A stretch of 53,423 nt of DNA from Intoshia linei (Eukaryota > Animalia > Orthonectida). The position numbers and the translations under genes were made by a program. This document shows, piece after piece, positions 2,191-47,850 of this stretch (position 1 is the stretch's first letter; every line of letters starts with the position of its first letter). Under the pieces are notes generated by a model, which worked only from the letters and a program-made list of their open reading frames with translations, ran no database searches and was not told the DNA's origin. The stretch spans positions 1 to 53,423 of the forward strand of contig LWCA01000112.1 of the NCBI GenBank assembly GCA_001642005.1. Direction: 5' to 3'.

Positions 2191-2894
2191 ATTCGATTGA
2201 GAATAATTTTACAGTATTATAAATATATATTAAACTTTGTAAATAAAATAAACTTATTATATTTATTCGCTACATGCCAAATATATAGTTATTTATTCAT
2301 TTATTTATTTTTTTTCGTTTATTTAAATTAACAGTTCACGACACCTTATAGGGTAAGTTTTTTAAAATCTTATTCAGAATTAATTCAAATTTGGCACGCC
2401 AATTTATCATTAGGTAATATACATTTCCCATTAGCGAAATTAGTATCACATCTCGAAATGGTTTACATAACCTGTATATTTTAAATTCATTTTAAATTAT
2501 ATTAATATTGTAAATTAATAAAATTAATGATTTGTATAAGTAATGGTAATTATTATATGTATTATATATAAAATTTTATATACACTAAAAAATTGAAATA
2601 CTGGAAGGTAAACATAGCTTCATACTAAGTTATCTGAAAATTAACAATAAATAGTACAATTTGGCACATAATCAAAACTTTTTAAAAGTAATTTATATTA
2701 CTTTAAAGCAATGTTAGTTAAAAATTATTGTATGTTTATTTGTTACAATTTATTTATAAAAGTAATTTGTGTAGAGTTTTAAGAATACTCATTTCTAATA
2801 CAATTTTTCAAGGATGATGTTTTATCGCAAATTTCATTTCCAGAAATGAAAATTTATTGAAAATGAAAAGATTTTAAAATTAAATGTCTTTCCA

Positions 2895-3560: not shown

Positions 3561-3602
3561 AATAAATATTTAATATAACATATAATTGAATTATAAATAT
3601 TT

Positions 3603-16033: not shown

Positions 16034-19000
16034 ATGAAAAGCCCAGATGACAAAACTGTTAAATCTGTTTTTCTAAACAATATAGACAGCTATCATGGGA
16101 AAAATATATCAAAGGTTAATTTAAACATAATTTTAAGTAATTGATCAAAAATTTTTTGAAAAATGCATTATTAATGAGAAATCAAATTGTGCAACTTTTT
16201 TTACATTTAAGACTGACTAAAATGTAATTTGTGCATTATACAATGTATTTATATTTAGAATTTTGGTAATACAGTGATTGGTTCTACATTGCTAGAACAG
16301 GATGAAGATAATGAAGAAATAATGAGTGAAGGTAGTGACGGAGTGGTGAATGCATCGAAAGAAGGATGTTGGAATACCATTGGAACCATCAAATGTGAAG
16401 ACGAGAATAAAAAAAAAGTACTGGAAAAGGAAATGACATGGGTTAAAACAATTTTAAATAAAAAAACTCGGGAAGAGCTCTATGAATATATAATTGAGTG
16501 TGATGTAATTATATATGATATTAGCATCGATTCAAGTGAAATTGATGAAGCTATGTGGGTATTATCAGGTTAGTTTTAATAAATTAATACAAATTTAATT
16601 TAGGAAATTATAAAATAATAAATTTGTAATTTAGAGTTAAGTTCAGATATAGAGAGATTTGAAAAAGCCAAAATTTTTATTTTACTTTCAAATGTTATGA
16701 CTTGGGCTAAAACCAAACCATTGGATCCGGTAATTTTTAATATAAAAAACTAGTTTTATGTGTAATTGATTGATGATATTTAGGATAGATTATATAAAAG
16801 ACCTTACGGTAGTGGTTCTCGACTATTTTGCGACATGTCAACTTTTTTAAAATTTAAAATTTCAAGTTTTTTTTAAATGCCGCGAAATTTCAGAAAATTG
16901 TAGTTATTTACGGTATATATAGTAAAAATGCGCTAAATCTAAACCTTTTATGGTTAAATAGTTGTACAAATGTATATGATTAATCTTGTCATTCAGGAAG
17001 AGAGACCACTAACTATGGACTACTAACCTATGGAACAATGATTAATGTTTATTTATAGGAAGACGTTGAAATGGCTTTTACAGAAGAAGATTATAGACGA
17101 AGAAAAGCACATCCAAATTTTCGGGAAAATATTACAGCTGAAAAAAATACAATTAAAATTGGAAAAACTGTAATTTAACAAATTCTCATTATTTATGTTG
17201 ATTCTATTGTACATTTTATTAAAAGTCAACTTTAAGATAAAATCAAAATTGTATGCGTACGTTGTGAACGCCGGAATGTGCTATGGAGAAGAAGAACAAT
17301 TATTTCACTATTTATTTAAGGTGCATTAATTATATACGGACGTTTACTTAACTCCAAACATTTTTACTAAAAATCTAAATTTATCAACCCTTGAATTAAA
17401 AATCCAGTTTTACCAACCCTAAAAAGAATAATCAAATTTACCGAATTGCAGTGTATCTCATAAAAACTAAAATACAAATTACTTATTGAATTGAAAAAGT
17501 TTAAATTTTATGTATTTTACATACTGTCACTGGTCACTGGTCACTGTCACAGGTCACTGTGAATTTATATACAATGTATATTATACATACTAGTTGATTT
17601 TATTTAGTTAGTTATTTATTTGGTTATATAATTATCATTTTTTATTTTAAATTTAGTCAGCATGGAGTAATGAAGAATATGTTGAAATCTATGGTTCAGG
17701 TGAAAACGTTATACCAACTATTCATATCAAAGATTTATCATCGTAATGCATATTATGTTAATCAATTTAGACCGGGACCATTTTTTTGAATGAATCATAA
17801 CTAAAATTTTTTTAGAAAATATTTATTGTCTTAAACCATTATATTTTTATTTTTATGTGAATCGGTAATTAAACTAAGAAGTTAGGTGATGTGCCCATAT
17901 GGTCACACTTGGGTTAAATGACTACAAAATTTGTAACATTTATATAAATACAGTATTCTCTTTATAACTCGTCATTCTTGAAATTTAGAAAAAGTTGGCG
18001 AGATAGATAATTAAAAATTATAGAAACAGCAGATAAAATTTTTAAAATATAAATTAAATGTTAAATTGCAATAAAATGTAAATTGTAATACAAATTGTAA
18101 AATTTAACATTTAGTTTATATTTTAAATTAATCGGGGAGTTAGAGAATTGGCGTGTTGTGGAGAGAATACTGTATATGTAATTAAATTTTCTCGTGTACA
18201 TAATACGACACAAAAAATGGAATATAATAAGGAACGCGCATTTATCAATTAAAAATATACTAGTATAGCTAGTTTATGGTCTACTCTAGAATCTAAGGCA
18301 GTGTTTCCCAACTAGTGCGCCAGCCATAAAATTATAAACCAGCTATAAACCATATAACAAAGGATCAGTTACATCAGATTTTTTTGTTTTTGTATAGAAA
18401 TAACTTTTCTTAACTTTGCAGCTTTTCCTTACAAAATCTTATATTATGATAAACTATTTCAGTAAGTACCCCAAAAATATACAATTTAGCAATAATGTAA
18501 AGATAATTTTCTTTAAACAACTTGGAATCTGGTGAATTTGATAAATACAATATACATTGTGGTATACATCTTGTATGTGATAATTTTCAACATTGATACA
18601 GAATACACAAAACGGCTACACTTGAAGTTTTTAAATATAAAATAAAAATGGAATCCATTAAAATTTAAAATTGAATTTAATACAATTTAATTTAATGAAT
18701 CAATTATTCACTAAATATTTTTAATATTCGATTTTATATCTATGGCTAGTATATAAAAGTTATATAAATTAGATTTTTTATTTTGTAGTTGGAATAAGAG
18801 GTTTTTTTTCATAAGATTTGGTAAAATCGGATTTTTCAAAAAAAATATAGAAAAAAGGGATTTTCCCTTAAGGGTTAATAAAATTGGATTTTTATATTGG
18901 GGTTTTATATTGAGCTGTTTTTATTAAAAAAAGAAGGGTAATTTGGGGTTTTGGCCCTGAAGAAATAATTTTTTTAAATTTAAATTTATGATAATGTTTA

Positions 19001-22000
19001 TGATTTTAAAATCCGCATCAGCGTATATATTTTTTTAAATTCTCCAACTCGTTTGATTTTCAAAAAGAGGGACAACTGGGGTTTTGACTAGTGATTGTGA
19101 TTTCACGGGAAAAATAGAAAATTTTTATTCATATATAATAGGGGCTCACAAACTCATTTCACCTACTGCCCCCTTTTTAGCAATATATTTTCTCAACGCC
19201 CCCTAAAAAATTTTTCCACTACGTCGTATATATATTTAAAAATTTACTTATTATTCAATATTTAATAATTAAAAAAAAATATATTTTTTACTTTCAATTT
19301 TTATATCAGTGGATCCCAAACTTGCTATCAAAATATAATAAAAGATATCGTCCACTTTGGGAACCCCTGATATATAATATACAGAATATGTAAAAGCATT
19401 CAAAATTTTAGAGATCTCAATTAATTTTAGAAACAAAAAAAAATATATATATTTTAGTTTGTTGAAAAAGTGTTTCAAAACACACATAATATTGATAGAT
19501 TCGTCTTGTGTTCTACGTTTTGTAACGAAATGAGAAACAGTAGAGGAATTTCTTTCATTTTGTGTTGACGTAGGTTGAACGGTCATAAGGGCTTACTTTA
19601 ATTTTAACAATCTTGATGATAGCGTCTCAATTCGTAACAACTCATGATATTTTTTAAAATAATATTGGACAAAGAGGATAATTCCCTGAACTGTTAGTAA
19701 TTTGTGGTTGGAATAAGAGATTTTTAAAAAAAGTATTGGAAAAAGGATATTTTTCCATTAAGGGCTGGAAATTAGATTTTTTATTTGTGGTTTGATGAAG
19801 TGGATTTTTTTCATAAGATTTCGTAAAATCGGATTTTTGAAAAGAATATCGGTGTAAGACAATTTTTCCATAAGGATTTGAAATGGTATTTTTGATTAAA
19901 TTTTATTAGTGGCAGTATTTTTGAAATGGTAAATTTTAATTATTATAATATAATCATATTTTCATAGTAATAACAAACATAAATCAAATACAGGTATGTC
20001 TCAATTTTTTTCGGAAAATCCCGGAAAACTTAATTCCCGGAAATTATTAAATATCCCGGGAATTTTGTCCCGGCACAATCACTAGTTTTGACCCGTAAAA
20101 TATGAAATTAGGAGGTTAAAATTTATGTTATTATACGTTTCGGAAAGAACTGTAATTAAGATGTGGTCTTTAAAAAATTTTAAGAGTGCTACAGTGTGTA
20201 CCATTTAAAACAGTGCACTTGAAAATAAGAAGTTTATCAAAAAACATTTTGACTGTAACAATTAAATTTGCCCAATAATAAAATTATTTGGATATTTATC
20301 TTAAGTATTTAGGAAAAAGTTAAAAACTTACAATTATTTAATTTACAATAAATGTTCAAAATGACTACCATCAGATTGGATATATAAATCAATGCGTTTA
20401 AGGAAATTGTTGTAAACATTAGATACTTCTTGAGTGCTAATTGAGTTAATACTGTTAATGATATTGGTTTTTACGGATTCTATATTTGAAGGGGAATTTT
20501 TATAAATTTTAGATTTTATTGTTCCCCACAAATAAAAATCACATGGCGTTAGATCAGGAGACTTTGGAGACCATATACTTTTTGATATTATTTTTTCGTC
20601 GAATTTTTGATTTAACTAATTCATGGATATAAATGAAGTATGGCATGTTTTAAACTCGATTAATAGCTAGACAAGAAATATTCTTTCACTCGTGGTTAAC
20701 ATTTCAAAAAATTAATATGAACTTGTTTTTATACAGTTGATTTGTTATTTATTTCGTCAGTGCACTCATAATATGAAATGATTTAACAAGTGCACTGTTT
20801 TAAACGGTACACCCTGTAGTTATTTCATTAAAGTCAGACACACACACAAACAAAAATCGCGTAGCCTTTTATATAAGTTAGGATAAATTATGAGAAAAAA
20901 TATTTAAGACTTTTTTTATTTAAAATAATGGAAATTTTTAAATTTTAAATTTTTGGGACTGTCAGTTTTCTCAATAAATGGTCACACCCATATTTTTAGC
21001 AACTGCTACTTTATATAAGTAAGGATACAACCATAATAACAATATAATACATATTAGAGTGCTGATAAATATTTGTGATATGAAACCGAAAAATAAATAT
21101 ATTGTAGCTGTAGATGAATCAAATGTCACTTTAGAAGAAATTGTTAGAGTAATTTATTAATTTAATTTAGCGTCCTCAACTTTGTAAAAAGGAAATATTT
21201 TATAAAATTCAAAATTTCAAATTTTAAAAGTGAAAAAAAGATTTTTCATTTTTATCTAAATACTTTTGTGTATGGATGGGACATGTATAACTATTTCATT
21301 TTACAATCCTTACTTATACATATGTATAAAGTACAATGATTAAAAAGTATGTCTGTTTAATTGTTCCAGTTTATTTAAGACTGTAAGAGGAGTCGGGTTT
21401 TACAAGTTCCATATTCTTATAACAGTTTTTCCAGAGTGATTTTTTATCGCAAATTTCAATTTTAGAAATTTAGTCCTTCAAGGTAAAACCCCAATTGTCC
21501 TTTGTTTATAAATTCAAACCCGTCCTAGAATTATACAAAATACATATTCTAATAAAAAGTTTTAAATTCATCAATATTATGATAATTTTCAATTTCAAAA
21601 TCTTCTATCTTAACGGCCAAAATCACAAATGTTCTTTTTTGTAAAAATTAAGAAAATCTTATAATTTTATACAACATAAATTCTTGAATGATTTTTAAAT
21701 TCATAAGTATTATCATAAATGGTAACTCTAAAAAGGTAATTTTCACGGTTAAAAATCGAGAGTATTCTTTATTTAAAAATGAAAACGTTATAAATAAAAT
21801 TTAAGTCTCAGATGTTGTAATTATTAATTCTTAATATATAATTAAAAAATAAAGTAAATTATAGACTGTTTCCAAAAATTTGGGAAATGGTTCAGTAAAA
21901 AAAATCAACAAAGAAGAAGCTCTATTAATGAAATCATTAAAGGTAATTTAAAATGTTTTATATTATATTTCATATCGCCCTATGGGCGATACCCATTTGA

Positions 22001-25000
22001 AACTATAAACTCGAAATTTGAGATGGATTGATAAGTTTATGTAATACATAATATACATGTAGGATCTATTAAGGGTAATAATTATTACCATATAATAATA
22101 TATAATTAGTATTATTATTATTATAATAGTAACTGATTAAAAAAAATTCTAAAAAACACAGAAAATTTTATTATGTTGACATCAGTGATATGTGATACAT
22201 GCATAACAATATAAATTATTTAAAATACATATATAATACAATATATATACAATTATAATTACAGCAAGCCGATTATGATCAATTGTTAATTAACTGCAGA
22301 ATCGATGCTTCCTATATAAATGAAAATATGCAAATAAGATGGCATTGTGACACCGGAATAGTAGAAAATATTGAAAAAGTAGTAAAAGAATATAGAAATT
22401 CAAGGGATTTATTGGTTTTTGTTTTTAATATAAATGGTGAATGAGCAATATTGATATTAATAAATAAATAATAATTGAATAATTTTTATATTTTCATTAT
22501 TCAAATTCACTGGTTGAATCAATGTTCGTAACACTGCTCCTAAAACTATTGAATGGGGGTAAAAATTAAAAAATATCATTTAATATTTCGGTTAGTAAGG
22601 GTAGTTCCATATAAAGTATCCATCGCATTCATCAACGATTAAACCTTATATCCTTAATTATATAAAATTAAATAATTTTTATAGCCAATAAGAGTATATA
22701 TAAATGGTCCACCTTCATCTGGAAAAACGTCAATAACAGAAAAATTGTGCGAACATTACAAGATACACCATATAAAAATAAAAGATGTGATTCTGGAAAC
22801 AATAGATAATTTGGTAATACAATAAATTAATAATAATTCACATATTTAATAATGCATAACTAATACATTTTATTATACAATTTTATATTTATAACTATCT
22901 TATAGTTATTATCTATCAGAATACAAACATAATATAACATGTAGAATATTATTAAGTAACGCTAAAATATATTATATATATATTTATTTTTCCAGAAATT
23001 AAGTGCAGCAAGATTGGAAAAAGTAGATAATGATGAAGATCCAGATCAAGACACTAGAGCTCAAGAAGATTCCGATTTATTGGAATCCGCATTAGCCAAC
23101 ATGGATGATAATAACGGAAGATTGGACGATTCATTCGTGATACAATTTTTAAAAAGAAAGTTGAAATCAGCTCCCTGTCAAAATCAAGGGTTTATTTTGG
23201 ATGGATATCCAAAAATAATTTCTCAATCCAAATCATTATTCGAACGTAATTAATTAATCAATTTTTAAAATAATGTAATGATAATTATAAAATTTAATAT
23301 AGAATTTTAGCTGATGACAGCGATGTGGAAGAAGAACAGGGACGAAAGGGCAATATATCTTATGACGAATCAATTATGGCACAACATATTTTTTGTTTGG
23401 AATCTCAGGATAATTTTTTACGTGAACGTATTATGAATTTACCAGAAACTGTTGTAGCTGGTTCTCATAATACAGAAGCTGGTTTTACGAGAAGACTTTT
23501 GCAATACAAACAAACAAATACCGATGAAGATACAATTTTCAACTATTTCGATGAAATTGAACTCCATGCATCAACATTTGGTATTAAATATTCATTTACA
23601 GCACGTTTTCTAAACTATTTTGACTTGTGACTACGAATATATATTTGCAGGGTTATCAAATTTACTGAAATTGAAAAATCGGTTTTTCGGTTTACTGTAG
23701 ATTCGACAAACCGTTAAACTCGTTTTATTGCAACGTTGAATGTCCATGGTAACTCAATTTAATTGCATAACGACGTTTAAAACATTTTAAACCAGAGAAT
23801 CTTTGTCAGAGATTAATAAATATACTTTACAAACACGCAAGCATACGGGAATTTTTAATTTTATAATATTTCACCAATTTACTGTTTCTTTATTTTCCAT
23901 TAAATCGAAATCACGCAAAACAATGAAAATGGTAGTTAAATGTAGATGAAAACTGTTGTAAAATAGTCTGAAAATAAGTAGTGAACCAATCGTATAGAAA
24001 CAAAAAATAAAAAAATTGGTTGAAGATATTGTCAAATATATAAAAATAGAGAAGAATAATTTAAAAACATTATTTTCATTCAATTTTTAAAAAAAACAGT
24101 GCATCAAGCATTTTAGGATTGAGTCGATTTCTCATTGAGGAAGAACTTAATCTACAGTAGTATTAATTTTTTCAACGTTGAAGTAATTACTCCTCCACTT
24201 TCCAAAAGAGTACAATCATTACTATTTAATTGGGGAACCGATAATTAAAATGGTTTTAAAATATTAATTAATTAAGTTTTGTGTTTATTAAAAAATTTAT
24301 GGGAAAATCGGTTTTTCGAATATTTTATTTCAGTTAACCGGTTTGACAACACTACTTGTGACTCACAAGTCATGTAACCAAGTTAAAATTTTCCGTTTAA
24401 TAAATTTTTGATTCTATAGTTAATGAAATGGAGTTGTATTGGACCAGAGCGCTAAAATTTATAAAAATGGAGATGTCTTGAAAACTATATAATAAAAACT
24501 ATTTATACCATGTTGATTGCGTTAATGTTAATATTTAGATGTAAGTAAAGACGAATCAATAAATAATCAACTAACAATAGACAAAATGATCAAAATAATT
24601 GGAAAATGTAAAAATTATGGACTTACATTGGAAGAACTAGAAAAGCTACGATTAGAGGAAATGGATAAACTACGTATCCAAAAAGCAGAACAAGAAGCTG
24701 AAATGGAAAGAATAGAATTTGACGAAAATGAAAAACGTGCAAAAAACCAAAAAGAATGGGTAAAAAATATAATTAAACTGAAAAATAACCATAAATATTA
24801 ATTATTTTCAATCAGGCTAAATTGCTCAAAGATGTACGCAGAGAAGAGTATGAATTATTGGAACAAAGATCTCTCCCTCTAAGAAATTATTTAATGGAAA
24901 ATGTTATGCCCACATTACTTCAAGCAATGAGAGCTTGCTCTGAAGTTAGACCTGATGATCCAATTGACTATGTGGTATTTTATCAAATCTTTATATTTTT

Positions 25001-25054
25001 ACACATTGATATTAGGCAGAATATTTATTTCAAAACAACCCAGAAGCAGATTAA
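16034..25054 (+). CDS. AK7: adenylate kinase 7 (ciliary; NAD-binding-like N-terminus, AK domain, C-terminal Dpy-30 motif), ~15 exons
   Basis: [27 protein letters not shown]; [18 protein letters not shown]; [15 protein letters not shown]; IPTIHIKDL; P-loop GPPSSGKT (22706); [16 protein letters not shown]; [17 protein letters not shown]; [16 protein letters not shown]...[21 protein letters not shown] (TAA ends 25054). Introns checked are GT-AG with consistent phases. Confidence 0.95.
19089..20084 (+). mobile_element. hAT MITE, TAGTGATTGTG family
   Basis: 11-bp TIR TAGTGATTGTG/CACAATCACTA and a perfect 8-bp TSD GTTTTGAC (19081-88 and 20085-92). Confidence 0.92.
19139..19369. mobile_element. Buster/Charlie-type hAT MITE nested inside the 19089 MITE
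   Basis: Imperfect TIR TAGGGGCTCACAAA / TTTGGGAACCCCTG and a perfect TSD ATATATAA (19131-38, 19370-77). Absent from the sister copy at 31073. Confidence 0.88.
20192..20816 (-). mobile_element. internally deleted Tc1/mariner transposon with transposase C-terminus
   Basis: About 30-bp TIRs CAGTGTGTACCATTTAAAACAGTGCACTTG / CAAGTGCACTGTTTTAAACGGTACACCCTG flanked by TA. Encodes [24 protein letters not shown]...DGSHFEHLL* (about 20574-20343), the SPDL(N/T)P-D..WG motif. Confidence 0.93.
21307..21800 (+). repeat. diverged family A Helitron-like copy
   Basis: A|TCCTTACTTATA 5' end and a degenerate family A body. Confidence 0.55.
23632..24354 (-). mobile_element. internally deleted hAT element in an AK7 intron
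   Basis: TSD CTTGTGAC (23624-31, 24355-62). Right TIR TTTGACAACACTA; left TIR TA[16-bp insert]GGGTTATCAAA. The minus strand retains [17 protein letters not shown] (24135-24085), typical of the hAT dimerization-domain end. Confidence 0.8.
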
Positions 25055-25110
25055 TTTTAATGAAAATTTTCTACATTATACATAATAAATATTAATTCAA
25101 TAAATTAATC

Positions 25111-27576
25111 TCAATGTTTACCGATTCGATATAAAATAATCTGCAAACCATCATCGTGTACAGACTGAAAGTTCCCATTTTTGCGGCCAACAATAATTAG
25201 TGTTTCGTCGTTGGCAGATAAAATTGCCGATATAACATGGAGAGAAGTTGTTTGCTTTAATATTAATATTCCCTTAGGCAAGTACCACAGATATATTTGA
25301 TTGTGGTTGTGAATTGTTACACAAAATGTTGCGTCGTGTGAAATACATGCGCTATTAACCTAAATATACATTGATTAGATTTTATCTGCAACATGTACGA
25401 ACGGTTACGTACGGGTAAAATATATTTAAAATATTGACCGTTTAAATTCTTGGGTGAGCCTAGTTAATAACAGCCATTTGCGAAACAAAAAATAAAGAAA
25501 CAGAAAAATAAAATAAATAATAATATTTTAACTTTTAAAATTTTAAAATATAAAGCGCAATGGGATATAGGACACTACGAATCATTAGCGTAATTTTTTT
25601 GCCGTTTTTCATTTTCGGAAGACCTCGAGCGTTATCAGTTCGGCTCTGGTTGATTGTATAAATAAAGTACCTCAATTTTGCTATCGAATAGATAAATAAA
25701 CTTGATGCCATCATTGACAATTTTATAAATAGAAATAATACCACCCTTAGTTGCAATTAAAACAAGTTGATGAGAATAATTGTGACATATAGTGGACAAA
25801 ACAATTCCTTTAGAATCCCTAGCACTTTCAGTAACCTCCGTTAAAGGTCGATTAAACAATTGACAACACTTGGTTGATGTAATTAAATAATTAACAATCT
25901 GTAAATTTGAATTAAAACACAAAAGAAATGACTTGTGCATAAAAGGAAATTGAATACAAGAAGACAAATTCCTGCAACAATCAATTTTCAAAACATTTAA
26001 AATATTTTCGTTAAGCAAATCAATAATATAAACAGTTTCACACTCATCAATTTGAGAATATTTCAAAATAACAGAATCCAAATGTTTAACAAAGTCCACT
26101 CTACAAGATTGTTTCATTTGATCAAGATTATAGTAATTATTGAAATGAATATTGATGGTAAAATTTTTAATTTTTTGCAAGTTTAATAGCGCATCAACTT
26201 TATAAATAAATAAAACAATAAAATATTGAGATTTTGTGGTTTGGTTAAACTCGACCGAAACAATGGAATTTTCTTTGGTATCAATACAATCTGCAAACAT
26301 AGGATAAAAATCAAAAGCAATATTTTTGAAATTTTCAATTTCATAAATACTTAAAACGTGACTATTAAACTCGGCATTAAATTTCAACCCACAAATCAAC
26401 AAGTCGTTATAAAGAAAAATCAACTGTTTATCAAAAGTAATATTTGAATCGTCTGCAATGTAATATTTTCCATCTAGCAAATTCCACAGGGTTGTTGGTC
26501 CATTATGACTTGAACAAATGACAATATTTCGTTTTTCACTCAACACGTAACATGAAAATTTGATATTATTAACATGGTCATCAATTTGTTGATCGATATC
26601 AAAAGTTTGGTACTTTTTAAAATTGACGTTATTTTGGTTAAAAGTATTACGAGCTACATTTCGCATCATTTTTCGACGTTGGGAAAAACTTTGACGGCTT
26701 TCTCTAGGCTGAGAACATGATCTAATGTAACTGTGTGATTCTCGTTTTGCAGCAAATTTCGAAATGTTTGATTTTGATTTTTGACGAGATATTGTGTAAA
26801 AATTTGCTTGTCTTCTTGATACGTTAGATTTAGGGTTAATGTTTGTAAAATATGAATTTTTTTTTCTTGTAGTTATACCAGAATAACTATTGTCCATGTT
26901 TCTTTGGTTCAACGTGTAATCTAATCCGTCATCCATTCCGTATAATGAATTGCTAGTTTCACTATCAGAGAAGGACAATTTTGAGGGTGAATTTTTACAT
27001 TCATATCTGAAATCATAAATTATTTCTTCTTCTTTATTTGATTTATTTTCATTTTTAAATGGCACGCTAGTCAGCGACACTGGGCATATATTTGGTACGT
27101 TACAGTTTATGTTAATTTTTGATGAGTATACCAATTTATGATTTGAATAGTTATTTTCATCTATACGTATATTTTGTTCTTCCTTGTTTTTATACTTTAC
27201 TTTTGAATGTGTCACGTAGTTTTCATTTAAATCCTTTTTCAAACACTGTGATTCATCAGTTTCCGTTTTTAGTTTGCCATCTTTATAAAAACTCATTTTT
27301 TGCTTTGATTTTGATTCATTTTTTTCCAGTTTCCTTTCCAATAGATTTGAATGGATTATATCATCATTGTTACTTTTATTGATGCAGCTTTTTGAGTCTT
27401 TTTGAATTTCGTTTATTTCATCTGATTTTATCAAAAATATCGATTCAGTGTTTGTTCCACACGTTTTGTCTTTTTCGGTTTGCGTCTGAAGTGATATTGC
27501 TTTATTTCGATTGTATTTGTCTCCTGTACATATACACCAGCCAGGTAAACAGAATATACAACACCAATTGGAATAT
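25111..27576 (-). CDS. cytoplasmic portion: Cys-rich juxtamembrane segment, low-complexity linker, WD40/beta-propeller-like C-terminus
   Basis: Continuous 1906-nt exon 27576-25671 (contains ORF 25635..27434), a GAG|GTAC donor, then last exon 25359-25111. WD-like blades: VICSSHNGPTTLWNLLDG, VLIATKGGIISIYKI and VNSACISHDATFCVTIHNHNQIYLWYLPKG. Confidence 0.75.
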
Positions 27577-30500
27577 CTTTTTAAAACATTAATTTTATAA
27601 TAAATTTACAGTAGCGACAGATTAAGTGAACTACCTTACTATGGAAGAAAAAGCGATCATGGATTGTTATGAAAAGTAGACCACCCTACACATATGTATA
27701 ACGTAGTTGCATCAAGGCAAAAAGTAATATTTCGACTAAATAATGGACCAAGTGCTGTGAAAAATCTGAATAAATTTAAAAGAAAAACATTTTTCAACTT
27801 AGAACAGTTACTAAAAACGGACAACCTTTTCTAAAAATGCTCCGATTAAGTGTCTCTACTCTATATATTTTAAATTTTACCTACAACATAGATACATTAA
27901 AAAAATGAGCAGAATTAAGATTGTAATAACCAAAAGGGTTATTATTACTGGTAAGATATATCCATTGTCAACTATAATTGTATTATTTCTAAAATTTAGT
28001 ATTGAATATAGTTATTATTATTATATGTTTTCGATTCATGGTAACACTTTTTCAAATCTTATCAGGGGACAAACACTTAAAATTGATAACAGATATCCTT
28101 TACTTATATAAAATTGAATGTCTGTGTGTAACCATTTAAAAAATCAAAATTCCTAAAATTTCAAAAACCAATTTCAAAAACCAATTTTTAATACATTTTT
28201 TCGATAATGATACTTTATCATACATCAATGATCAAAAATTGAGTCCTTCAGGATCAAAAACCCAATTAAGAGTCTTAGAATTTAAAAAGCATAACTTATG
28301 TGACCTTGTAAATTTTAAAATTAAAAAATTTCAGAATTTTAAAAGAACAAATTCTTGGACAGTTTTTGAAAATGATGATCATTATCATAAATCATAACCT
28401 CAAAACTTGTAGTTTCACGATAAAAAGCTTTGATTCATAAAAAATATGATAAATTAATATAATTTAACCAACCACTTGACCCAATTGCTATAAAAGCTTA
28501 CTACCCTTGATTTATATTATTTAATAATGAATAATATTCATTGAATATATAATAAATAATATAATAATAATAATATATAACAAAATACTCATTTTTAATA
28601 AGGTATGGCGGAGTAACATAAGATACACCTCCCATCAATAGTTGATAAATTCCAACATTTCCATCAATAAAAATTCCACTGACAATTCCGTAATAGTGAT
28701 TAAAATTACTATTATTATCAAATCTATGCGTTCCAACGTATACACGATTAAATATGAAATTTTCATATAAATCATCTATTTTTATAATATAGTAGGTATA
28801 AAATAATTATTACATTATATAATATTTTAACAGTGTTTCTTAAACTAAGTCCGTTCAATTTTTCGGGACCGCGAAATATTTTGTAGTAATTATACATAAT
28901 ACATGTATAAATATTGACGATTAATTATGTATGATAAAATTTAATGTTTGATTATTTATTTTATTATAATCCTAATTTATATAATATGCTACGCGATTTT
29001 TGTTTGTGTGTCAGTCTGTGTGTGTGTTCAGCTTTATTTAAATAACTACCCGTCTTAGAATTTTATAAAGTCCACATTTCAATCACAGTTTTTTCCGGGT
29101 GTGTTCGCAAATATAATTTCAACCTCCCAAACTAACATCTTACGGGTCAAAAACTACAATTCTCCCTCTTTTTGTAAATCAAACGAGTTGGAGAATTTAA
29201 AATTTTATTTTTTTTGGAATTTATGCTATTTATGACAATTTTTAGGATTGGATTGTTTTTACTTTATTTTTAAATGTTAACCAACAAAAAATTAAAATGA
29301 AATAATTCACTTTAAAGTAAAAAGTAATGTGATATGATGGTTCCACCTGACACAAATTTGAGAACCACTCCTTTAAAGGGTTGATAATAGTAAATATTAG
29401 GATTTTTAAATTAGATTTTCAACGTGAATTTATTTTTTATTATAATAAAAATGTGCCCTCGGCAGAGCTAGGTCCTGTTTGTACGTAGTACATAACAGTC
29501 AACCTAGTAAAATATAAATATTAACCGTAAAAGCTTAACTAAATATGTTAACTGGAGAAAATTGTCACCCCAAGATACCCAAGGGGTGAATAATTCTATT
29601 AGGTGGTGAATACTAAAATTTTAACATATTCTATTTAATTTAGTAAAATCTTATTAGAAAAAACTAAAATTTTACCAACCCTAAAATAAAAAACCCAATT
29701 TTATTAAACTTTTAAATCAAAAATCCATATATTTGATCCCAAAAGAAAAAACCAAAATTTTACCAATATTTATCTTAAAAATCTCATTTTATCAAAAATT
29801 AAATATTTTAAGAATAATATAATAAATAAAATAATTTTAAATGAAAAATAAACCGCAGTTTTCCCACCTCTGTTTTAGGTTGTTAAATTTTTTATCGATT
29901 GCCAGAACTAGTTCTAATCCATGGTAAACTTTTTTACTAAGAATTCAAAAATATGTTTCAATTTGAATAATTCGAATATTCGATATTTATTTTATCATTA
30001 TGAAATTTTTAGTCCATTGTGACTTATACATTTTTTGAGATGTCCAATAAAAATGTTTGTTGAAATAAGGGGTCTGTGGAGTTTTTAGTTTAAGAATCAC
30101 TGTTATATTAGTACATAATATAGTATATGATTGATGCCATTTTTAATTTTTGTTTGGACCATTTTTTTATCCTAATGGGTTAAAAATTAAAAAAAAAACC
30201 AAAATTTCTGAATTTAAATTTTTACCGAAATGTCATATTAACATTTGTAAATGTTTATTTAATTTAAGTACAATTCAACATTATGATGCCATAATGCCTC
30301 CCATATTGATAAATTCAAATCACATTATCAACCGCATGCAGACGTGGAGAGCCAGAAATAGGCCCGGACAGTTGGAAATTATAGGGCTCCATACGTTTTT
30401 TTAAAATTGGGACGTCTATAGTATAAACATTGTTTAATCGATCGTTAAAAATTAAAAAAAACAGTTGTAAATCGAATTGCTCATCATAATTTTGACATAC

Positions 30501-33500: not shown

Positions 33501-36500
33501 GTTGACCATAATAAAAGAGAATGGATGATTTAAATTTACATTTTGAAGTGATTTTGAAAGTGACTTTTCTAAGTTTGAAATTAATATATTTATGTATATA
33601 TTACACCATTGTTAAGCTTCTATTGACATGATATTTTAAGGAGGGTAGTTTGGGGAAATTGATCAACCCAGTCATACATGGTAAATATTTTTATTTTCTT
33701 AGTAAAAATAGAAAAACCTATTATAATTATACATTTTAATTAGTTAATTTTTGTACAAAAAATAATATTAAATAACCTCAAATAAATAGATATATGTATA
33801 TAAATTTAAGAGACATGTGAATTGAAACTGTACAATTAATTATTTTTTGTGAAAAATTACCATCTGTGTTAAAAATTTCTTTATATTCGTTATACGAAAT
33901 AATATATTTTTTAAAGTTATATATTTCAAATTTTCCAATATAAAGATAAACGATATTTAATATAAAAGGGTCAATTGAACTATCATCCAAATCACCAAAT
34001 ATCAAAGATGTGTAAGGTACCATTTCATATTTGGATTTTAAAATGAATTCTAAATAATTTTATACGATAAAATTTAAAATAAATTACCAATAATTTCTTT
34101 ATCAACTGACACAATTATTTTATTATTAATTTGACAAATTTTTACAATAAAAAAATAATTTTTATCAATTTTCACATGTTTATATTCCTAAAATTAAGAA
34201 TTCAAAAAATGTAAAATGAATCAATTACATTATTAAAATCAACAATTAATTGTCCGTTTATGAATAAAAATTGGACAATCTTTTTGTGAGAATCAAATAA
34301 ATTAAAAAAATGATTATTATCAATTTTCACACAAAATTGAATAGGATGAATAAGTAAATTTTTTATTTTCTTTTCATCATTTCCAGCATTAAATCTATTA
34401 TCCACATTCACAAAAATATATTTATCTGTAATCAGCGTAGTATGTGTTTGTATTTCACATTTATTTCCAAAAAAATTGGTAAAACATTTACATTGATAAA
34501 ATCCGTACTTGAGAGATACACATTTAGATCCGTTCATGCAGTGCATAATGTAACCTTTTTGACTATTACTGAAACGTTGATCATTACAAATGTTTTCATG
34601 GGATATTTTTCGGCAAATTTTTGAATTTTTAGTTTCATATAATCCATTAAATAACGCTTTTGTATTTTCAGTTTTATCGGGTACATTCAATAACATTAAA
34701 CAACCAAAGAAAAACTTACAACCGTCCTTATCGTTGTATCCAATGTTAACGTTTGGATTAATAACATTTCTTTTTTTATTGTTTTGGTTTCGTAAATGTA
34801 ATGTTTCTGATTTACTGATACCATGTTTAGTTTTTAGATTTATTGTCATTATATTTGAAGAGTAAAATATCTCTATATTGTATACATTTCCTAATCTCAT
34901 TTTCTCGTTTATATAGGCTACGTTTGATGACGAATAAAAGTTTAAATAGCCCATTAACATGTCTACGTGGATTTTTACATTTTCAAAATTTACTGTGCAT
35001 ATGTGACTTGTTTCTTGATATAAAACTACACTCATTATAATGGGAAATGATGTTTCTTTTAACGTGACACTCATTGTACTTGAACCATCAAAATTTAATA
35101 CACCTTCCTGATTTACTCTTTTTATTATGTTGTTTATGTTTACGTTTTGATGAATGTTTTGAGATTTAACGTTTGTCACAGGGGTTCTATAATAATAATA
35201 TTAGTTCCTATATAATAATGAGAGGCTGACCAGCAATGCTGTATTTTGCTGATCGTACTTGTCATATGTACTAAATATTGTAACTTGTATAATGTAACCT
35301 TGCCGGGTGAAATAAATCGGGTTTTCGGTTAGAGAAACCAATGTAAACAATACATTAACATGAAATAAAATTATCAAAAATTACTGACTTTTCCATATTT
35401 TTCCATAAATACCGTCTGAAACATTTACTTCAGTCAATACATTATTTTTGATGGCATCGATACTCTCTCCTTTAGACAGATTAATGGAAAACTAATATAA
35501 TATATTATATTGAAATAAAGATTTATGTAGGGTTGCCAACAGAGCCGTTTTAAGGTATGGTAAATATGGGCTGTAGCCCAGGGCCACTCATTAAAAAGGC
35601 CCCAAATTAATAAAAGTACTTTACATTTATATCTTAAAAAGAGCTCTTAAATCTTAAGTCTTAAAAGAGTATCTTAAAATGACTGCATGGTGCATATTTT
35701 CAAATGAAAAAGTAAACTTTGTTCATTAATTAATGTAAGTAGGTTTTTGTAAAAGAAATAAAAGTTACTAGAAACATACATGTCTTTTAATGCTTTTATT
35801 AATACTTAATGAAATAAGACTCTCAGTTTCGAACCCACAGTATGCCTTGTCTTCATAACAGGGGACTTTTTTTTAATTATTTATTTTTTTATCGCTTCGC
35901 TCGAAATTTTAAAAGGCCTCCGGCCCTTTGCTTAACCCAAGGCCACGAAGTGGCTTAAGACGGCTCTCGTTGCCAATCGTTCATTATATAAAGGATAATC
36001 AGATGTGAGTTTGAGAGATTGAAATTTATTTTGCTAATACCCGGAAAAAACTGTAATTGAAATGTGGACTTTATAAAATTCTACAACTGGTAGTTATTGA
36101 AATAAACGGTAACACACACAAAAACAAATATTACGTAGCATATTATATAAGTAAGGATTATATAGTCAATTCTTTATAATTTAAACAGTCGGAGAAAATT
36201 TAAAAAAAAGTTAACAGTTTAAAATTCTGAACAATAAAAAATATTATACATGTATGCCATATAAAAAAAAAATATGACAATTATAATTGATAAAACTTGG
36301 TGAAACCTTACAATTTATTTAAAATCAATATAAAAATTTTTATTTAAACTTAATCATTAATTTACAATTATTTTTTTAGTCAGTAATTTCTAATTGTGAT
36401 TTTTTTGTTCTTCTAATGCAGTGGTTTCTGATTCATATAGTGTCCGGAGTCCGGACCCCGTTTCAAAAAAATTTATTTTTTTGGACCCTAAGGGACGCAT

Positions 36501-39500: not shown

Positions 39501-41208
39501 AGCAGTTACTTGAGTTTTTTTTTCATTATACCATACATTTAAGTAAGACGAACAAAAAATTCCATAATTTAAAGTGGAACCAAATACACTTAATCGTATG
39601 GTAAATGTAAAAGATTTGAAAACTAGATTAAAATCTGGTTGTAAAATTGATTTTACTTGGGAGTTTGTATTGTAACTATTTTGGTGGGTCTTTTCGTCAT
39701 TAATATAATTTTGCATTTTTAAATTTTTTACAATATTTGCTACAATATCTGAGCCCATATCTATATAATCATTCTTGTTTTTTATCCATAAAAATTTTTC
39801 CGTTTTAATGTCACCACTATGAAAAACAATATTTCCAACCAATTCAAATTTACTAGATTTACTGAAATGAAAAATTTTTGTTCCAATAAAATTTTCTGGT
39901 TTCATGTAAATTTTACCAAGTTGCATTCCGTCTAAATGTTTATTTTAATGTTGGGACTTTTAACATTCACTGTAATCTATGCTCCAAAAGTGCAATTTTT
40001 CTGAAAATGTTGAAATATGTGATTTTTTTGTGTCACTTTAGAGCAAGGGTTCTCACAATTTTTAAATTTTTTGACTTTTTGGTCTATTTTTAATTTTAAT
40101 TTTGCTTGCGGACCCCCCAAATAAAACATATCTAAAGAAAATGATTTAATTTGATTTGTATTTTTAATTGTTAAATTAATAACAAATTATTTAAAAAATC
40201 AATTTATTTTTTATAATTCAAAATTTTATTTAAACTTGCAGACCCCCGAAAATGGACTCACGGACCCCCGGGGGTCCGGAGACCTAAATTTGACAACCAC
40301 TGCTTTAGAGCATCGACTTTAATATTAAAATATGAAAAATATTTAAGGAACAAAGCGAACCTGCCTAATTAACTTCTAATAAAAAAAAATGTGTAATGTG
40401 TAATTTCAATAAATTTTAAAAAATATAAAAAACCTTTACAATCTTGATATTTATGAATACAGGAAATTTCTTGGTTAAGAACATTTAAATGACAAAACTG
40501 GTCACCTTTACATATCGATATTGATTTAGAATTTAAATTTTGGCCGCACTTGTCCTGTTGAATAAAGTTTGAAATAAAAACAATGGCAGGAATAACAACA
40601 TGACATTGACCGCATTTCCTCAACCTAACATTTACAATTTGTCCACTAAACGGAGTATAAGCAATAGAATTTCCGAAAAGAATTTGATTGGACAACAGAC
40701 TTCCAAAACTGAGAAAAGCTTTATTAAATTCAGAAAGTGAATTTGATAAATTACATACTTGAACATGCGATCCATGTGTATTTGAAACGGCTTTAATGGA
40801 TTGTAAATTTTGTAAGGATATTTTAATTTTATATGGTTGAAATTCAATAATTAATGTTTTCCAATTTTCAAAATTTGCAATACTGACAAAACAATCAGTA
40901 ATTCCAAACAATTTAATTCCATTACGTTCCAGAGAAGCATATAAAAACTTTGATTCGTTTCCAATATAAAAAAGAAACATTTTTTCAGATTCATTATATT
41001 CATAATTATTTTGTTTAATATACAAATAAGGTGATGAAAATGTATTTAAGTAATTCTGTGACAGTAAAAAATCTAATATTAAATAATCACCAGTACACAA
41101 TTCATTCCAATCATAAACTAAACTTCCATTCTTGAAACCCTCAAACTTGTGTGCCTTGAAGGTATTTATATATAATAAAACATTTAAAATTATTATCAAC
41201 ACATTCAT
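25111..41208 (-). CDS. alpha-neurexin-like LamG/EGF type-I membrane protein with a long cytoplasmic tail ending in a WD40-like domain
   Basis: Signal peptide MNVLIIILNVLLYINTFKA followed by HKFEG..SLVYDWNELCTG, resembling the alpha-neurexin LamG1 start. Repeated LamG-like exons (41208-40434, 39931-39128, ~38724-38238, ~35187-34230, ~34050-32790). EGF repeats CMNGSKCVSLKYGFYQCKCFTNFFGNKCE and CSNNCNLGYCSNQKCICSYSAHDGENCDK (~31976-31888). Last LamG ...FNRVYVG...YYGIVSGIFIDG (~28775-28590). TM exon ~27988-27881 (YILPVIITLLVITILILLIFLMYLCC). Then exons 27576-25671 and 25359-25111 (TGA). Some middle exons (38.8-39.1 kb, 35.3-35.5 kb) are uncertain. Confidence 0.65.
27609..27861. mobile_element. 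degenerate Tc1/mariner-type MITE in the intron after the TM exon
   Basis: TA|CAGTAGCGACAGATTAAG ... TTAAGTGTCTCTACTC|TA, an imperfect inverted repeat flanked by TA. Confidence 0.6.
28096..28440 (+). repeat. diverged family A Helitron-like copy
   Basis: A|TCCTTTACTTATATA 5' end, GTGTGT tract and degenerate body. Confidence 0.5.
28970..29507 (+). mobile_element. Helitron-like family A element with both termini
   Basis: 5' A|TCCTAATTTATATAATATGCTACGCG...(GT)n. 3' hairpin CTGTTTGTACGTAGTACATAACAG followed by CTAG|T at 29504-29508. The middle is deleted or replaced. Confidence 0.7.
31073..31802 (+). mobile_element. hAT MITE, TAGTGATTGTG family
   Basis: 11-bp TIRs and TSD ACAGTAGT/ACAATAGT (7/8 match). 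Colinear with 19089-20084. Confidence 0.9.
32205..32400. repeat. ~29-30 bp degenerate minisatellite (TTTTACCAACCCTAAAA core), direct units followed by inverted units
   Basis: About four direct units at 32205-32310, then inverted TTTTAGGGTTGGTA units. Related units occur at 1-165, 13190-13400, 17370-17450, 29640-29800, 36530-36940 and 37530-37700. Confidence 0.65.
32556..32768. mobile_element. piggyBac-type MITE
   Basis: TTAA|CCCTTTCACTGTCT ... AGACAGTGAAAGGG|TTAA: perfect 14-bp TIR and TTAA TSD, with an internal subterminal direct repeat. Confidence 0.9.
35540..35968 (+). mobile_element. hAT MITE, CAGAGCCGT family
   Basis: TIR CAGAGCCGTTTTAAG / CTTAAGACGGCTCTC and a perfect TSD GTTGCCAA. 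Confidence 0.9.
36001..36157 (-). repeat. 5' fragment of family A Helitron-like element
   Basis: (AC)n...GCATATTATATAAGTAAGGA|T end. Confidence 0.7.
40044..40302. mobile_element. Buster/Charlie-type hAT MITE
   Basis: Ends CAAGGGTTCTCACAA / TTTGACAACCACTG, perfect TSD CTTTAGAG, subterminal GCGGACCCC motifs. Confidence 0.85.
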
Positions 41209-41584: not shown

Positions 41585-44500
41585 TTATTTAACTCGGTAT
41601 AGCATTTTTCTGTTTAATCGAAATTGCATTTCACCTCTTCGTAGCATGAAATGTAATACTTTACAAACTTGATCTTCGGAATATTTCTAAGATTTAAATT
41701 TTACAAATATGCATATCATAATAATAAGAACAATAAACTCGTTATACAAAGGGGAGGGGAAATTATCATGAAAGCGATAAATTAAAAGTAATTATACATA
41801 ATAGTTTTTTATCGGCTGCACGCATTAGTGAAGCGTAATTTAAATCATAATAATTTTAAAAATTAAAAAAATCAGACTTGGCAGATAAAAACATATAAAA
41901 ATATACCTGTCTAACAAAATCTTGAATAATAACATGTTGCGGGACCGTTGAACCAACCAGAAACCTTTTTTTAAGTTGAGATTCAATAGTCCTTAAAACG
42001 CCTTGCTCAGCCAAACTGGTAAATTCTGGAGCACCACTGAGAGAACCTACACTCGCTGCATGTAAGGTAGATTCCTTGAACAATCTCAAAGCCTCTTTTA
42101 TATCGTTTTCGTTTGCAAACGAAGATAATCTCATTTTAGCTATAGCTTCAGATATTCTAACAATAGCTTCCAATTGTCTGGAAAAAAATTATTACAATAT
42201 TTAAAATTTTATCACCGAACCGTAATTGGAATAACTGGTGCTTTGCCAGTTTCATTTTCAATTTCCTGAATATTCAATTAAAAATATTAAATTAAAGGGA
42301 AGAATAAAATCAGGGGAACACAAAATTTTTTCATATAGGTGATAAAGCCGTTCATACCATTAAATTTTTTGCGTATCATTTGAAATGTCTTTTTGTTAAT
42401 TAATAATTTCAATCTGATCCATCACATTGCTTAAAATCTTAATACAGGCTAATTCCTCGTTAACGGAATAATTAGTTCTGAAAATAAATCTCATTCCGCT
42501 ACCGATGAACTTTTTAATAAATAATGTATACATTAAAACAGGGGTTCCCGATTGCTCCAAAACTATATGCCTGGGCCGCGAGATTCAAATAAAATATAGA
42601 ATAATTTTGATCAACTTTATTTTTATTTATTATTTATTTTTATAAGAGAATTTTTAATATTTATTACAGAGTTTCTAGAATCTAGATGTTGATTATTCCA
42701 AAACCTAGACGACCGTTACATAATAATTTCAAAAATCCCACTTTTATCCTACCATTAATAAGATTTAATAAAAAATACCATTTCAATAGCCCTCAGGGAA
42801 AAATTTTTAGGGCCTATTTTTCATTTTCAAGTGGCCTCGAGTTTGATATCTAAATTATGACCCAAAACAAAAAAGGTTTGACAACACCTGCATTATATCC
42901 TCAAAATCTTATTATAATAATAATAAATTTTACTTGAATTCCATTTCGCATTTTGACATACTAAATAAATCGAAATATATAAGTTTTAATTCAAACCTGA
43001 TCACGTAAAACAGCAGCAGCTTTATTGGTCAATCGAGGCGCGCATTGTTGACGGCAATACGCAATATATCTTCTCAGTTTATCCATACTAATTTCAGCTT
43101 TAACTTCTTCAGAAATTTCAGTATTCATCATGTGCACGTCGATAACATGACGCGCCATTTCTTGGTCACGATTCACATTATATTTATCCTTCATGATGAA
43201 TATCATATCGAATCGAGATAAAAGAGTGGGCATCAAATCAATATTCTGATCCATTCTGGAATCATCCCATTTACCTAATGCTGAATTCGCGGCAGCAAGC
43301 ACGGCACATCTGATTAATACAGATTTATATAATAATAATTTAAAACAGATTGTTCCAAGCAAATTAGGATTTGGTCAAAAATTTTACCCGTTGTACATGA
43401 AATTTTTTTAAAAAACCTCCAAAACGCATTTGTAAAGTTATATGTTAGGTTAACATTTTTCTAAAATGCGTTTTTTCTCTACAACTGTAGATCGACTTGA
43501 ATAAACTATATCAGACAAAATTTGTTTTTAAATTATAGAATATTAATTATAATTACTGAATATTCCTGAAAAACTGATTAATAATATCAATATAATAAAT
43601 TTCAAATAAAAAAAAAATAAAAACTGTTTTTGACAGAAAACTACGATACGAATATTGATTTTTTTTACAATTCTAGGAAATGGTTCCGATTGGGGTCCAA
43701 AAAAATATGTCTGGGATCCGTGATAATCAAATAAAATATAAAAAAATTTTTATCAACTTTTCTTTATTTTATTCAGTAGGTTTTTTAATATTATTACCTA
43801 ATTGCCAGATGTTTGAAATTTACCTCAAAGCCTATACGACCGCTACATTATTATTTCAAAAACCCCACTTTTATTCCACCATTAATAAAATTTACAGTGC
43901 CATAAATGTTAATAAAAAATAGCATTTCACACACAGGCAAAAATAGAATTTTACAACCCTTAAGGAAAAATCCCTTTTTCCAATATTTTTTGAACAATTC
44001 TTTAATTTTTTCATAAATGTTATATATTTCATGCTTCCTTTAGGGACAAAAAAATAAATATTTTGAAAAGTGGGGTCCGTATACTATTTGAATCGGGACC
44101 GCTGTTCTATCTATTAAATTTTTCAATTATTCAAAATAATGGGTAATTTGTCATTTTGATGATAAAAATTTATCATATAAATATAATAAAATTCATAAGA
44201 CTGAATTAGCCATAACTGAACGACAGATACCAACATTTCTTAGAATTTGTCTTTTTTTAAATTCTAGAACCCTTAGTATCTTAAATTTTATAATTAATTG
44301 AGATTATAATTGTAAAAAGAAATTTAATTATTTACACTAAAAATGTGATTTAGAAACAAACATAAAAATTCGCGTCCATTAAAAATAATATTTACCAACT
44401 AATTCAGCGGACCATAAAATTCGAATGGGCCGCACTTTGGACCATTTGATTTAAACTAAGAAAAACAACAAAATTTTACCTTGAATTTAATGTGGTGGTT

Positions 44501-46376
44501 ATTCCTGCTTTAGCTATTGAAATAGTTTGTTGTTCCATTGCTTCATGAATGGCTACCCGATCATCTTCCCTCATTTTGTCAAATTCATCAATACACACGA
44601 CCCCACCATCCGCTAAAACCATTGCTCCACCTTCCATTACATACCCTTTTGTAACTGGGTCCTTAATAACAGAAGCTGTTAACCCAGCAGCACTACTACC
44701 CTTACCTGAAGTGTAAACACCGATAGGTGAGCATCTTTCAACAAATTTAAGTAATTGACTCTTAGCTGTTCCGGGATCACCAAGCATAAGTAAATTTATG
44801 TCACCACGTCGCGTCAAACCATCATATAAACGTTTTCTAGAACCAGAAAATAAGACACATGCTATAGCTTTTTTTACATTATCAGAACCCCAAATAGATG
44901 GAGCAATACTTTTAGCAATAATATCATAAATATTGGGAGTAGCAGCCATTTTTTTAAATTCTTCTTCGTCGGCAGCAGTATACGAGAAAATAGAATTGAG
45001 ACATTTATCATTCCCTCCTCCATCAATATTATCTGTAAAATCCACACCTAGCATTCTAACGTAAGGTTTTCGAGTGCTCGCATTCTCTGGTTCACTACCC
45101 TTACTTTTTAAGAAATTTTGCTTTTTTATACAATAAATACCCACAATGTTGACTCTATTTCCTGGAACCACAAGTTCACACAATGATCTGTCACAATATA
45201 CTTGAATAGCCCTAGGTATTTCGCCACACGGTATAGAATCTGTAGTTTCTTGTAATCTGATCGTTTGCTGGTTATAGCTTTTGCATTTATTAGGTAAAAT
45301 AAAATAAGGATCCACTGGACACGTGGCTGCATCACCTTTTCGGGTTGGTCCACTAAATAAAATTAAAAAATCAAAATTAAAAAAAAAATACGCATTAGTG
45401 CACTTTTTAGGTAACATGTATCCGTCATATCCCCTATCCACTTGTATGTTGCTTATCACTTGTTGGCAACCTCTGCATTGAATTGACATACTAGACGCTT
45501 TGGAACGAATATTTGATACAGATGTAACAATTCCAGTGATATTATTAATTTTAGACATTAAATCTGATTTCAGATCCCGTAAACCGATACAAGATTCATT
45601 GGATCCAAGCATTATTTGAAAATCTCCAATTTCTACGCCATTTTCTCTCGGTCTCGTCACATCGTCAACAGTACATTTTATTGCTTCCTCAAACTAAATG
45701 TTAATAATAAAATTTCAATATATTATAAATAACCAATTCAATCGTATCAGATGGAGAATTTTTAAGATGTTCAGACAATTCATTATCAAATAATGACAAT
45801 TGTTCCATATTCACTTTTACCCATTTTTTTCCAAGGTTAAAATTTCTCTTCAACTCGTCTCTGGAAATTTACTATCAAGTTTTAAAAACTTTAGAAATAG
45901 CCTCAATACTCATTTTTTTAAACTACCCAAATTTTCTTTACTACTAGTTATTTCTTAGGGACCTGTCATACATGAATTTGACATCAATAAAGTACAAGAC
46001 TCCAAGGACTGAGAAGTGGCGATTTATAAAACATTCTGTTTCCACGTCGGGTAAGAACCGGATCAAGTTCGACTGGGGAGAATTCTAATCTAAAATAATG
46101 TCCATTGGAGCTAAGCAACTTTGATTCACTACTAAACCATTTTTTAAACCCAATATTGAAATTTTTTCTATGGAAATGAAAACCATTCATTAAAAAATTT
46201 TAATATAAAATACCGTACCTGTAAATAAATAATCCATTAACATCCCGATATTCTTTCAAAAACTTTTTAAACCGACTGAGGAGGTTTGTACGAGAATAAG
46301 ATTTTTGATTGGACTTGTTTATTCCAATACCAAAATTTTCACTTGAATAAATAGCTCCAGTATCATAGCCAGACAT
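41585..46376 (-). CDS. MCM5: DNA replication licensing factor MCM5
   Basis: [16 protein letters not shown] start; [13 protein letters not shown]; [26 protein letters not shown] (Walker A); [43 protein letters not shown]; LSRFD; [16 protein letters not shown]; C-terminus [18 protein letters not shown] ending at 41585. Confidence 0.97.
42539..42890. mobile_element. Buster/Charlie-type hAT MITE in an MCM5 intron
   Basis: Ends CAGGGGTTCCC / TTTGACAACACCTG; flanks CATTAAAA/CATTATAT (6/8 TSD). Confidence 0.7.
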
Positions 46377-47328: not shown

Positions 47329-47850
47329 TTAAATACTAATGCTTTCACTGCATCTTCCGCAGGTTCTTCTATTTTTGTGATTAGCCATGAAAATTCCTGG
47401 ACCACATTCTTTGCATGACTTTCGTAACCTAACCAAAGTATCTATACCATCAATTTTGTTAATTTGATAAGCAATAAGTGGAGCAAGTTTAACTTTTCGT
47501 TTTTTGTGTGGTATTCTTCTAGGTGTATTAAACTTTTTCTTCTTCTTCTTTTTACCTCCACCAATACACGGCACACAGGCATCAATTGTACTTAAATTTC
47601 GAATTCCATATGATTCTACCAATTGTTCATTACATAACAATTTTCCTTCGAAAAATAAAGAATAATCTAAAGTTATTAAATTCAAACCAGATTCAATACA
47701 TACCGCAATTCAAAATATTTCTTAATTCTTGTATTGTTGATATCGATGAAAGCTAATATTCATTGATTAAATTTTTATAATTTTAATTATTTAAATTACA
47801 TCAATAATTTGAATTGATCCATCAACGTCTCTGATTAAAACTTGCATCAT
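47329..47850 (-). CDS. RPS27A: ubiquitin-like domain-40S ribosomal protein S27a (eS31) fusion
   Basis: Exons 47850-47800, 47752-47704 and 47666-47329 (145 aa). S27a part GKKKKKKKFNTPRRIPHKKRKVKLA...RLRKSCKECGPGIFMANHKNRRTCGRC with a C4 zinc finger. The N-terminal UBL ends in ...CIGG. Confidence 0.93.

Follow-up and report, generated by a model that had tools for sequence, protein, structure and literature searches.

A candidate type I surface protein gene of Intoshia linei with a transmembrane exon that may splice in frame into a long orphan tail

Locus and gene model

The window analyzed here is contig LWCA01000112.1 of the orthonectid Intoshia linei (NCBI GenBank assembly GCA_001642005.1, positions 1 to 53,423 of the forward strand), and its subject is a set of minus-strand exons between an ATG at 41208 and a TGA at 25113-25111. 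As judged from the DNA, these exons probably form a single gene encoding an EGF-containing type I surface protein with a 718-residue tail; this is the favoured reading. The locus had been singled out in an original prediction, which described a neurexin-like receptor whose transmembrane (TM) exon splices in frame into a long tail ending in a WD40-like propeller. The coding exons and junctions were checked by reading the minus strand from 28300 to 24900 and by a listing of open segments. The features are summarized in Table 1.

Table 1. Positions of the exons, introns and other features of the candidate receptor gene within the window
Feature	Position	Strand	Remarks
First coding exon	40372..41208	-	ATG, signal-peptide-like start (by eye), beta-rich module, Cys-spaced EGF-like end
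Ectodomain exon	34205..35200	-	confirmed EGF domain (residues ~214-262), beta-rich modules on either side
TM exon	27881..27988	-	TM helix 27951-27883; ends ..LMYLCC + AG (phase 2)
Intron 1 (304 nt)	27577..27880	-	donor GTAAAA, acceptor AAAAAG at 27577
Tc1/mariner-type miniature inverted-repeat transposable element (MITE)	27609..27861	.	inside intron 1
Cys-rich juxtamembrane segment	27522..27576	-	5 Cys in 18 residues
S/N/K-rich low-complexity linker (~310 residues)	26589..27521	-	first in-frame ATG 27296-27294
Beta-rich domain	25671..26588	-	about six blade-like units (by eye)
Intron 2 (311 nt), GTACTT...TTTAG	25360..25670	-	repeat fragment at ~25562-25661
Last exon	25111..25359	-	82 codons + TGA (25113-25111); one to two blade-like units

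The genome searched was the I. linei assembly (41.6 Mb in 3520 contigs, GC content about 25%), in which the window is contig C1544. Profile, homology and structure searches were run exon by exon. Pfam was searched with 22 exon pieces, and the sole matches were sub-threshold ones, one to EGF and the others to propeller families in the last exon. Strict enumeration yielded about nine likely introns in the window, which is too few for a donor matrix.

The transmembrane exon and its probable junction with the tail

The TM exon encodes a stretch of 23 uncharged hydrophobic residues and ends in LMYLCC plus the two bases AG, with GTAAAA at 27880; coordinates and frame at 27881 agree with the phase-2 end that had been predicted. 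The donor AG/GTAAAA belongs to the GTAA/GTAT type of the likely short introns in the window. A 1906-nt exon (27576-25671) begins in phase 2 after the AG at 27578-27577, again as predicted; the first base of this exon completes an Arg codon, after which it reads YSNWCCIFCLPGWCICTG, and it was translated as 635 residues without stops. No other AG occurs from the stop that opens the frame to the beginning of the Cys-rich coding sequence, so that both the acceptor and phase 2 are fixed. For the junction to the last exon, the donor is GAG/GTACTT (25671/25670) and the acceptor is TTTAG (25360), exactly where the frame of the last exon opens. If spliced 27881->27576 and 25671->25359, the tail comprises 718 residues and ends in RIGKH.

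In the 1906-nt exon, Met appears for the first time at codon 94. Upstream of this ATG the frame is open for 103 codons, back to the stop at 27608-27606 (P 4.5e-5 in mononucleotide shuffles), the other two frames over the same stretch have 5 and 10 stops, and open runs reach 103 codons in only 15 of 8127 cases in the whole window. The beginning of the exon is rich in Cys, Trp and Gly, unlike the local non-coding DNA. Since the leader is open beyond chance, the exon needs an upstream coding exon, a requirement that the original prediction had derived from the lack of an in-frame ATG over about 90 codons.

Across the join of TM exon and tail, 7 Cys occur within 24 residues, two of them closing the TM exon and five in the first 18 residues of the tail, versus 3.1% Cys in the remaining tail. 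The Cys-rich juxtamembrane segment is thus present as described, and the run across the join reads as a single putative acylation cluster next to the membrane.

The TM exon has a second possible acceptor at 27973-27972, and it matched only the TM segments of CD34 and endomucin, weakly in both cases. A second phase-2 donor, AT/GTATCT, lies inside the exon (window 27897-27881) and precedes the main donor by 15 nt; its use would swap MYLCCR for a single Ile and leave the tail in frame.

The transposable element of intron 1

The insert in intron 1 is a Tc1/mariner-type MITE. It is flanked by TA at 27607-27608 and 27862-27863, and its ends are inverted repeats starting (C/G)AGTAG.GACA, with imperfect terminal inverted repeats (TIRs; 9/12 bases, then TTAA). 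Ten partial copies occur elsewhere in the genome, 78-84% identical to the window element, and in three of them the similarity begins exactly at TACAGTAG. The TA duplication, the CAGT-starting TIRs, the length of about 250 nt and the dispersed, diverged copies are shared with other intronic MITEs derived from Tc1/mariner, from which the element differs in nothing unusual. It is relevant because its excision restores a short intron: removal of 27609-27861 together with one TA leaves 17+2+30 = 49 nt, the typical length that had been calculated for the intron without the element. The published median intron of I. linei is 57 bp (PMC6543705). As the ancestral 49-nt intron holds no usable ATG, the 1906-nt exon had no possible partner other than the in-phase TM exon before the MITE was inserted.

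Repeats are also found in both neighbouring introns, and repeat-swollen introns are evidently normal and tolerated in this gene. A high-copy repeat at about 28077-28428 fills much of the intron of about 650 nt upstream of the TM exon; it gave 698 first-look candidates, the scored copies were 71-86% identical, and it apparently consists of two sub-units (query positions 103-295 and 333-454). The fragment in intron 2 shares 75% identity with stretches of contigs C1136 and C65, and no clean TIRs were found in it.

Features of the predicted tail

The low-complexity linker of the original prediction is present as about 310 S/N/K-rich residues between the Cys cluster and the beta-rich domain. No homologue of the 635-residue exon was found with a word-indexed search or with a HMMER scan of 1.84 billion representatives, and there was no self match either; Pfam gave no match to the 1906-nt exon or its fragments, and no paralogue of the tail was found within the I. 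linei genome. Because the library includes ribosomal protein S27a (RPS27A) of the same contig and still holds no self match, the 635-codon exon (25671-27576, minus strand) is probably missing from public annotation.

Evidence on the fold of the tail comes from several sources. In Pfam, the last exon matched the NWD2_C, EML_2, CDC20-Fz and ACSF4 propellers with E values of 0.013-0.1, all far below the curated cut-offs, and in the PDB it matched WD40 and designed-propeller chains. The match to a designed 'Cake' propeller (E 4e-7) was discarded as a measure of homology, being inflated by summed matches of about 3 bits each to identical blades; it indicates a blade-like motif only. For the 344-residue domain, the ten best named neighbours in a protein language model were all propeller families, with scores of 0.92-0.94 that lie below the range of reliable recognition. 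AlphaFold, run without an alignment on the 344-residue stretch 26702-25671, placed 20 strands and almost no helix, with a mean predicted local distance difference test (pLDDT) of 35 and a predicted template modelling score (pTM) of 0.25. By eye, the tail divides into seven to eight units of 40-55 residues each, four of which fit a WD-like blade pattern.

Like the WD40 and other beta-propeller scaffolds (RACK1, G-beta, CFAP52, EML, C-terminal propeller of NWD2), the tail domain appears to be all-beta and built of 40-55-residue repeats, and several of its units share the blade pattern of WD40 proteins, i.e., a hydrophobic strand, S/T, a small loop, G and a hydrophobic strand ending in W/Y. In contrast to these scaffolds, the tail reaches no curated cut-off, and the confidence of its model is as low as given above. 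The predicted WD40-like propeller is plausible, in that an all-beta character, blade-like units (by eye) and propeller neighbours are suggested, but no propeller family was matched above its curated cut-off. On balance, the presence of a beta-propeller in the tail is slightly favoured.

The ectodomain and its relation to neurexins

The exon at 34205-35200 contains one EGF domain, confirmed by a match to a Notch EGF in a PDB search (E 1.8e-5); the Pfam EGF profile scored 18.6 bits on the same exon, which is below its cut-off, and AlphaFold was uninformative for it (pLDDT 33). Two further EGF-like modules were recognized from their Cys spacing only, by eye. The layout, likewise by eye, is one of three EGF-like modules with about two beta-rich modules between each. 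The first coding exon has no Pfam family, no homologue at E 0.1 and no PDB match, two other exons retrieved no neurexin chain from the PDB, and no paralogue of the ectodomain exons was found in the I. linei genome.

No LamG domain was detected. The LamG profile did not match any exon, even at E 10; the genome-wide PF02210 scan lists contigs C454, C1626, C1004, C1921 and C3303, with the window not among them; and hhalign of the window exons against the genome's own LamG domains gave probabilities below 1%. The only sign in the direction of LamG came from the protein language model, which gave weak neighbours (0.92, few shared features) from the ConA-like/Laminin_G_3 clan. As LamG domains are recognizable elsewhere in the genome (up to 89 bits), divergence of the species does not explain the silence of the window. 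Laminin-, Fat- and Celsr-like genes are also recognizable in the same genome.

Alpha-neurexins have six LNS/LamG domains and beta-neurexins one, and the neurexin tail, about 55 residues long, carries a PDZ-binding motif at its end. With the alpha-neurexins (NRXN1-3, Drosophila Nrx-1), the window gene shares a signal-peptide-like start, a long ectodomain with a layout resembling three LNS-EGF-LNS units (by eye), and one TM helix, placed close to the C-terminal third. It differs from them in having no LamG/LNS match and no homologue, in a tail of 3 (unspliced) or 718 residues, and in an intron placed straight after the TM helix; a model of the Syndecan/neurexin-type tail gave no match in the window. 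The genome's own Caspr/Neurexin IV-like gene on contig C454 likewise encodes a type I LamG/EGF adhesion protein, but with a Laminin_G_2 domain of 89 bits, an EGF domain of 27 bits and a short tail, recognizable features that the window gene does not have. The original label thus holds for EGF modules placed between other modules, one of them confirmed, and for the layout; it does not hold for LamG domains, a short tail with a PDZ motif or homology in sequence. 'Neurexin-like' is best taken here as a description of what appears to be the layout and not as membership in the family.

The Caspr-like gene lies on the minus strand of C454:23064-33063, at 2781-2978 and 5414-6454 of that stretch; a fibrinogen-like block and an exon with a TM helix and a short tail ending in EFFM were recognized by eye. 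A LamG-EGF-LamG gene is located on the plus strand of C1921:2500-12499, at 1391-5393, with a Laminin_G_2 score of 31 bits in the genome scan and 19.8 bits for the fragment. As a candidate for a conventional protein of the neurexin, crumbs or agrin type, the latter gene is preferable to the window gene.

Alternative gene models

Several observations weigh against a single gene with a spliced tail. The donor read in frame is AGG TAA (TAA 27879-27877), a point absent from the original prediction, and unspliced message would yield a receptor ending CCR-stop; such a tail-less receptor, terminating three residues past the membrane, is a legitimate product. In intron 1 the acceptor, AAG, follows a run of purines, unlike the likely introns of the window, which end in TTTAG, ATAG or ACAG. 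The MITE, as had also gone unmentioned, carries two mini-exons with an ATG and a phase-2 donor, one formed by ATG 27660 and GTAGTT at 27634 (leaving a 58-nt intron), the other by ATG 27712 and GTAGGG. Third codon positions in the linker are A-rich (0.43-0.46), unlike the T-rich exons here (0.41-0.50), which are those of MCM5, the ectodomain and the tail's own beta domain. The 635-residue exon is contained in no public protein, although the library does include RPS27A from this contig, and AlphaFold confidence is very low for the tail domain and the ectodomain exon alike (pLDDT 35 and 33). On the other side, ectodomain and tail are both single-copy orphans in the genome and protein-library searches, which was counted for one gene.

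Much of this would suit two genes, i.e., a surface protein that ends at the CCR-stop and a separate cytosolic, possibly N-terminally lipidated tail protein, expressed from an internal promoter and started at the MITE ATG 27660-27658 (donor after 27635), at ATG 27712 or at the Met 27898-27896 of the TM exon. The in-frame TAA at the TM-exon donor, the two MITE ATGs with phase-2 donors (one with an intron close to the 57-bp median), the weak AAG acceptor of the long intron and the absence of the fused protein from public records point in this direction. However, both mini-exons lie in sequence that is common to other copies of the MITE and represent transposon consensus, not evolved exons, and the G at +4 of both donors is seen in no likely intron of the window. 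The gap between the exons before the insertion was 49 nt and free of ATG, the Cys cluster is continuous over the join, and a cytoplasmic tail of three residues would be unusual for a type I receptor. Two genes are therefore considered unlikely, while still deserving appreciable weight beside the in-frame splice of the original prediction, which stands as the most parsimonious interpretation of the sequence with regard to phase, the 49-nt ancestral spacing and the Cys cluster. The exons may also have been joined once, with the MITE having impaired splicing, such that the receptor is now tail-less and the tail frame is drifting; the diverged state of the MITE inside the intron, the scant codon-position structure of the linker and the lack of homologues or paralogues of the tail would fit. 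A decaying relic of this kind is improbable in view of 717 stop-free codons in a genome of 25% GC whose open runs average 12 codons, of T-rich third positions in the beta-rich domain like those of other exons in the window, and of the frequency of MITE-bearing introns in this gene. Least probable by far is a tail start at Met94 (27296), the first in-frame ATG, with an upstream frame that is open by chance; it was rejected on the shuffle test, on the rarity of open runs of that length in the window and on a Cys/Trp/Gly-rich beginning that does not resemble non-coding DNA.

Neighbouring genes

An adenylate kinase 7-like gene is located at 16274-25085 on the plus strand (ADK domain E 2.8e-6, Dpy-30 motif E 1.6e-12) and is convergent with the tail gene, whose stop at 25111 lies only 26 nt from the end of the kinase gene's last open segment (25085). 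With a gap of this size between convergent gene ends the 3' untranslated regions must overlap. Directly upstream of the receptor gene lies an orthologue of MCM5 (41856-46376, minus strand); several of its introns are short (40-51 nt), and its last exon ends about 650 nt from the receptor ATG at 41208. RPS27A is encoded at 47332-47685 and matches an NCBI record of I. linei.

Proposed protein and implications

From the single-gene reading we infer a type I membrane protein with a signal-peptide-like N-terminus and a long, very divergent ectodomain, in which EGF-like modules would be interspersed among beta-rich modules. A single TM helix would be followed, via the splices 27881->27576 and 25671->25359, by the cytoplasmic tail of 718 residues. 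This tail would begin with the membrane-adjacent Cys cluster, which is likely palmitoylated, continue with the disordered S/N/K-rich linker of about 310 residues, and end in all-beta repeats, about 390 residues in total, which probably form a closed WD40-like propeller of 7-8 blades. The frames and phases, the dependence on an upstream exon, the MITE and the EGF domain are shown by the analysis, while use of the splice, the topology, palmitoylation, the propeller fold and any role as a scaffold are inferred. A receptor of this design would bring its own protein-docking platform with it and would not recruit partners through a short peptide tail.

The most specific version of this proposal is an LNS/EGF-type single-pass adhesion receptor of an orthonectid in which the short PDZ-ligand tail was swapped for a palmitoylated anchor, a disordered 310-residue linker and a 7-8-bladed WD40-like propeller. 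This version is tentative, less likely than not and more doubtful than the gene model on which it builds, and the replacement of a PDZ ligand by a built-in scaffold has the status of a hypothesis. No described single-pass receptor that ends in a cytosolic WD40 propeller is known to us, and a text search for described receptors of this kind found none. A literature search on Intoshia and neurexin, or on neurexin with a WD40 tail, found nothing relevant.

The weight of the proposal is limited, as it concerns a gene model, read from DNA, for an orphan protein without homologues in one fast-evolving species. The gene model on this contig may need correcting, given a 635-codon exon that was not found in public protein libraries. 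Provided that the exons are spliced as proposed and that the tail folds as a propeller, the gene would represent an unusual wiring of an adhesion receptor to the cell interior, with the docking platform built in. The protein would then be a receptor-scaffold fusion without a described counterpart, in an animal with a drastically reduced nervous system and gene set, and an example of a simplified parasite rebuilding its cell-surface signalling from fast-evolving, lineage-specific parts.

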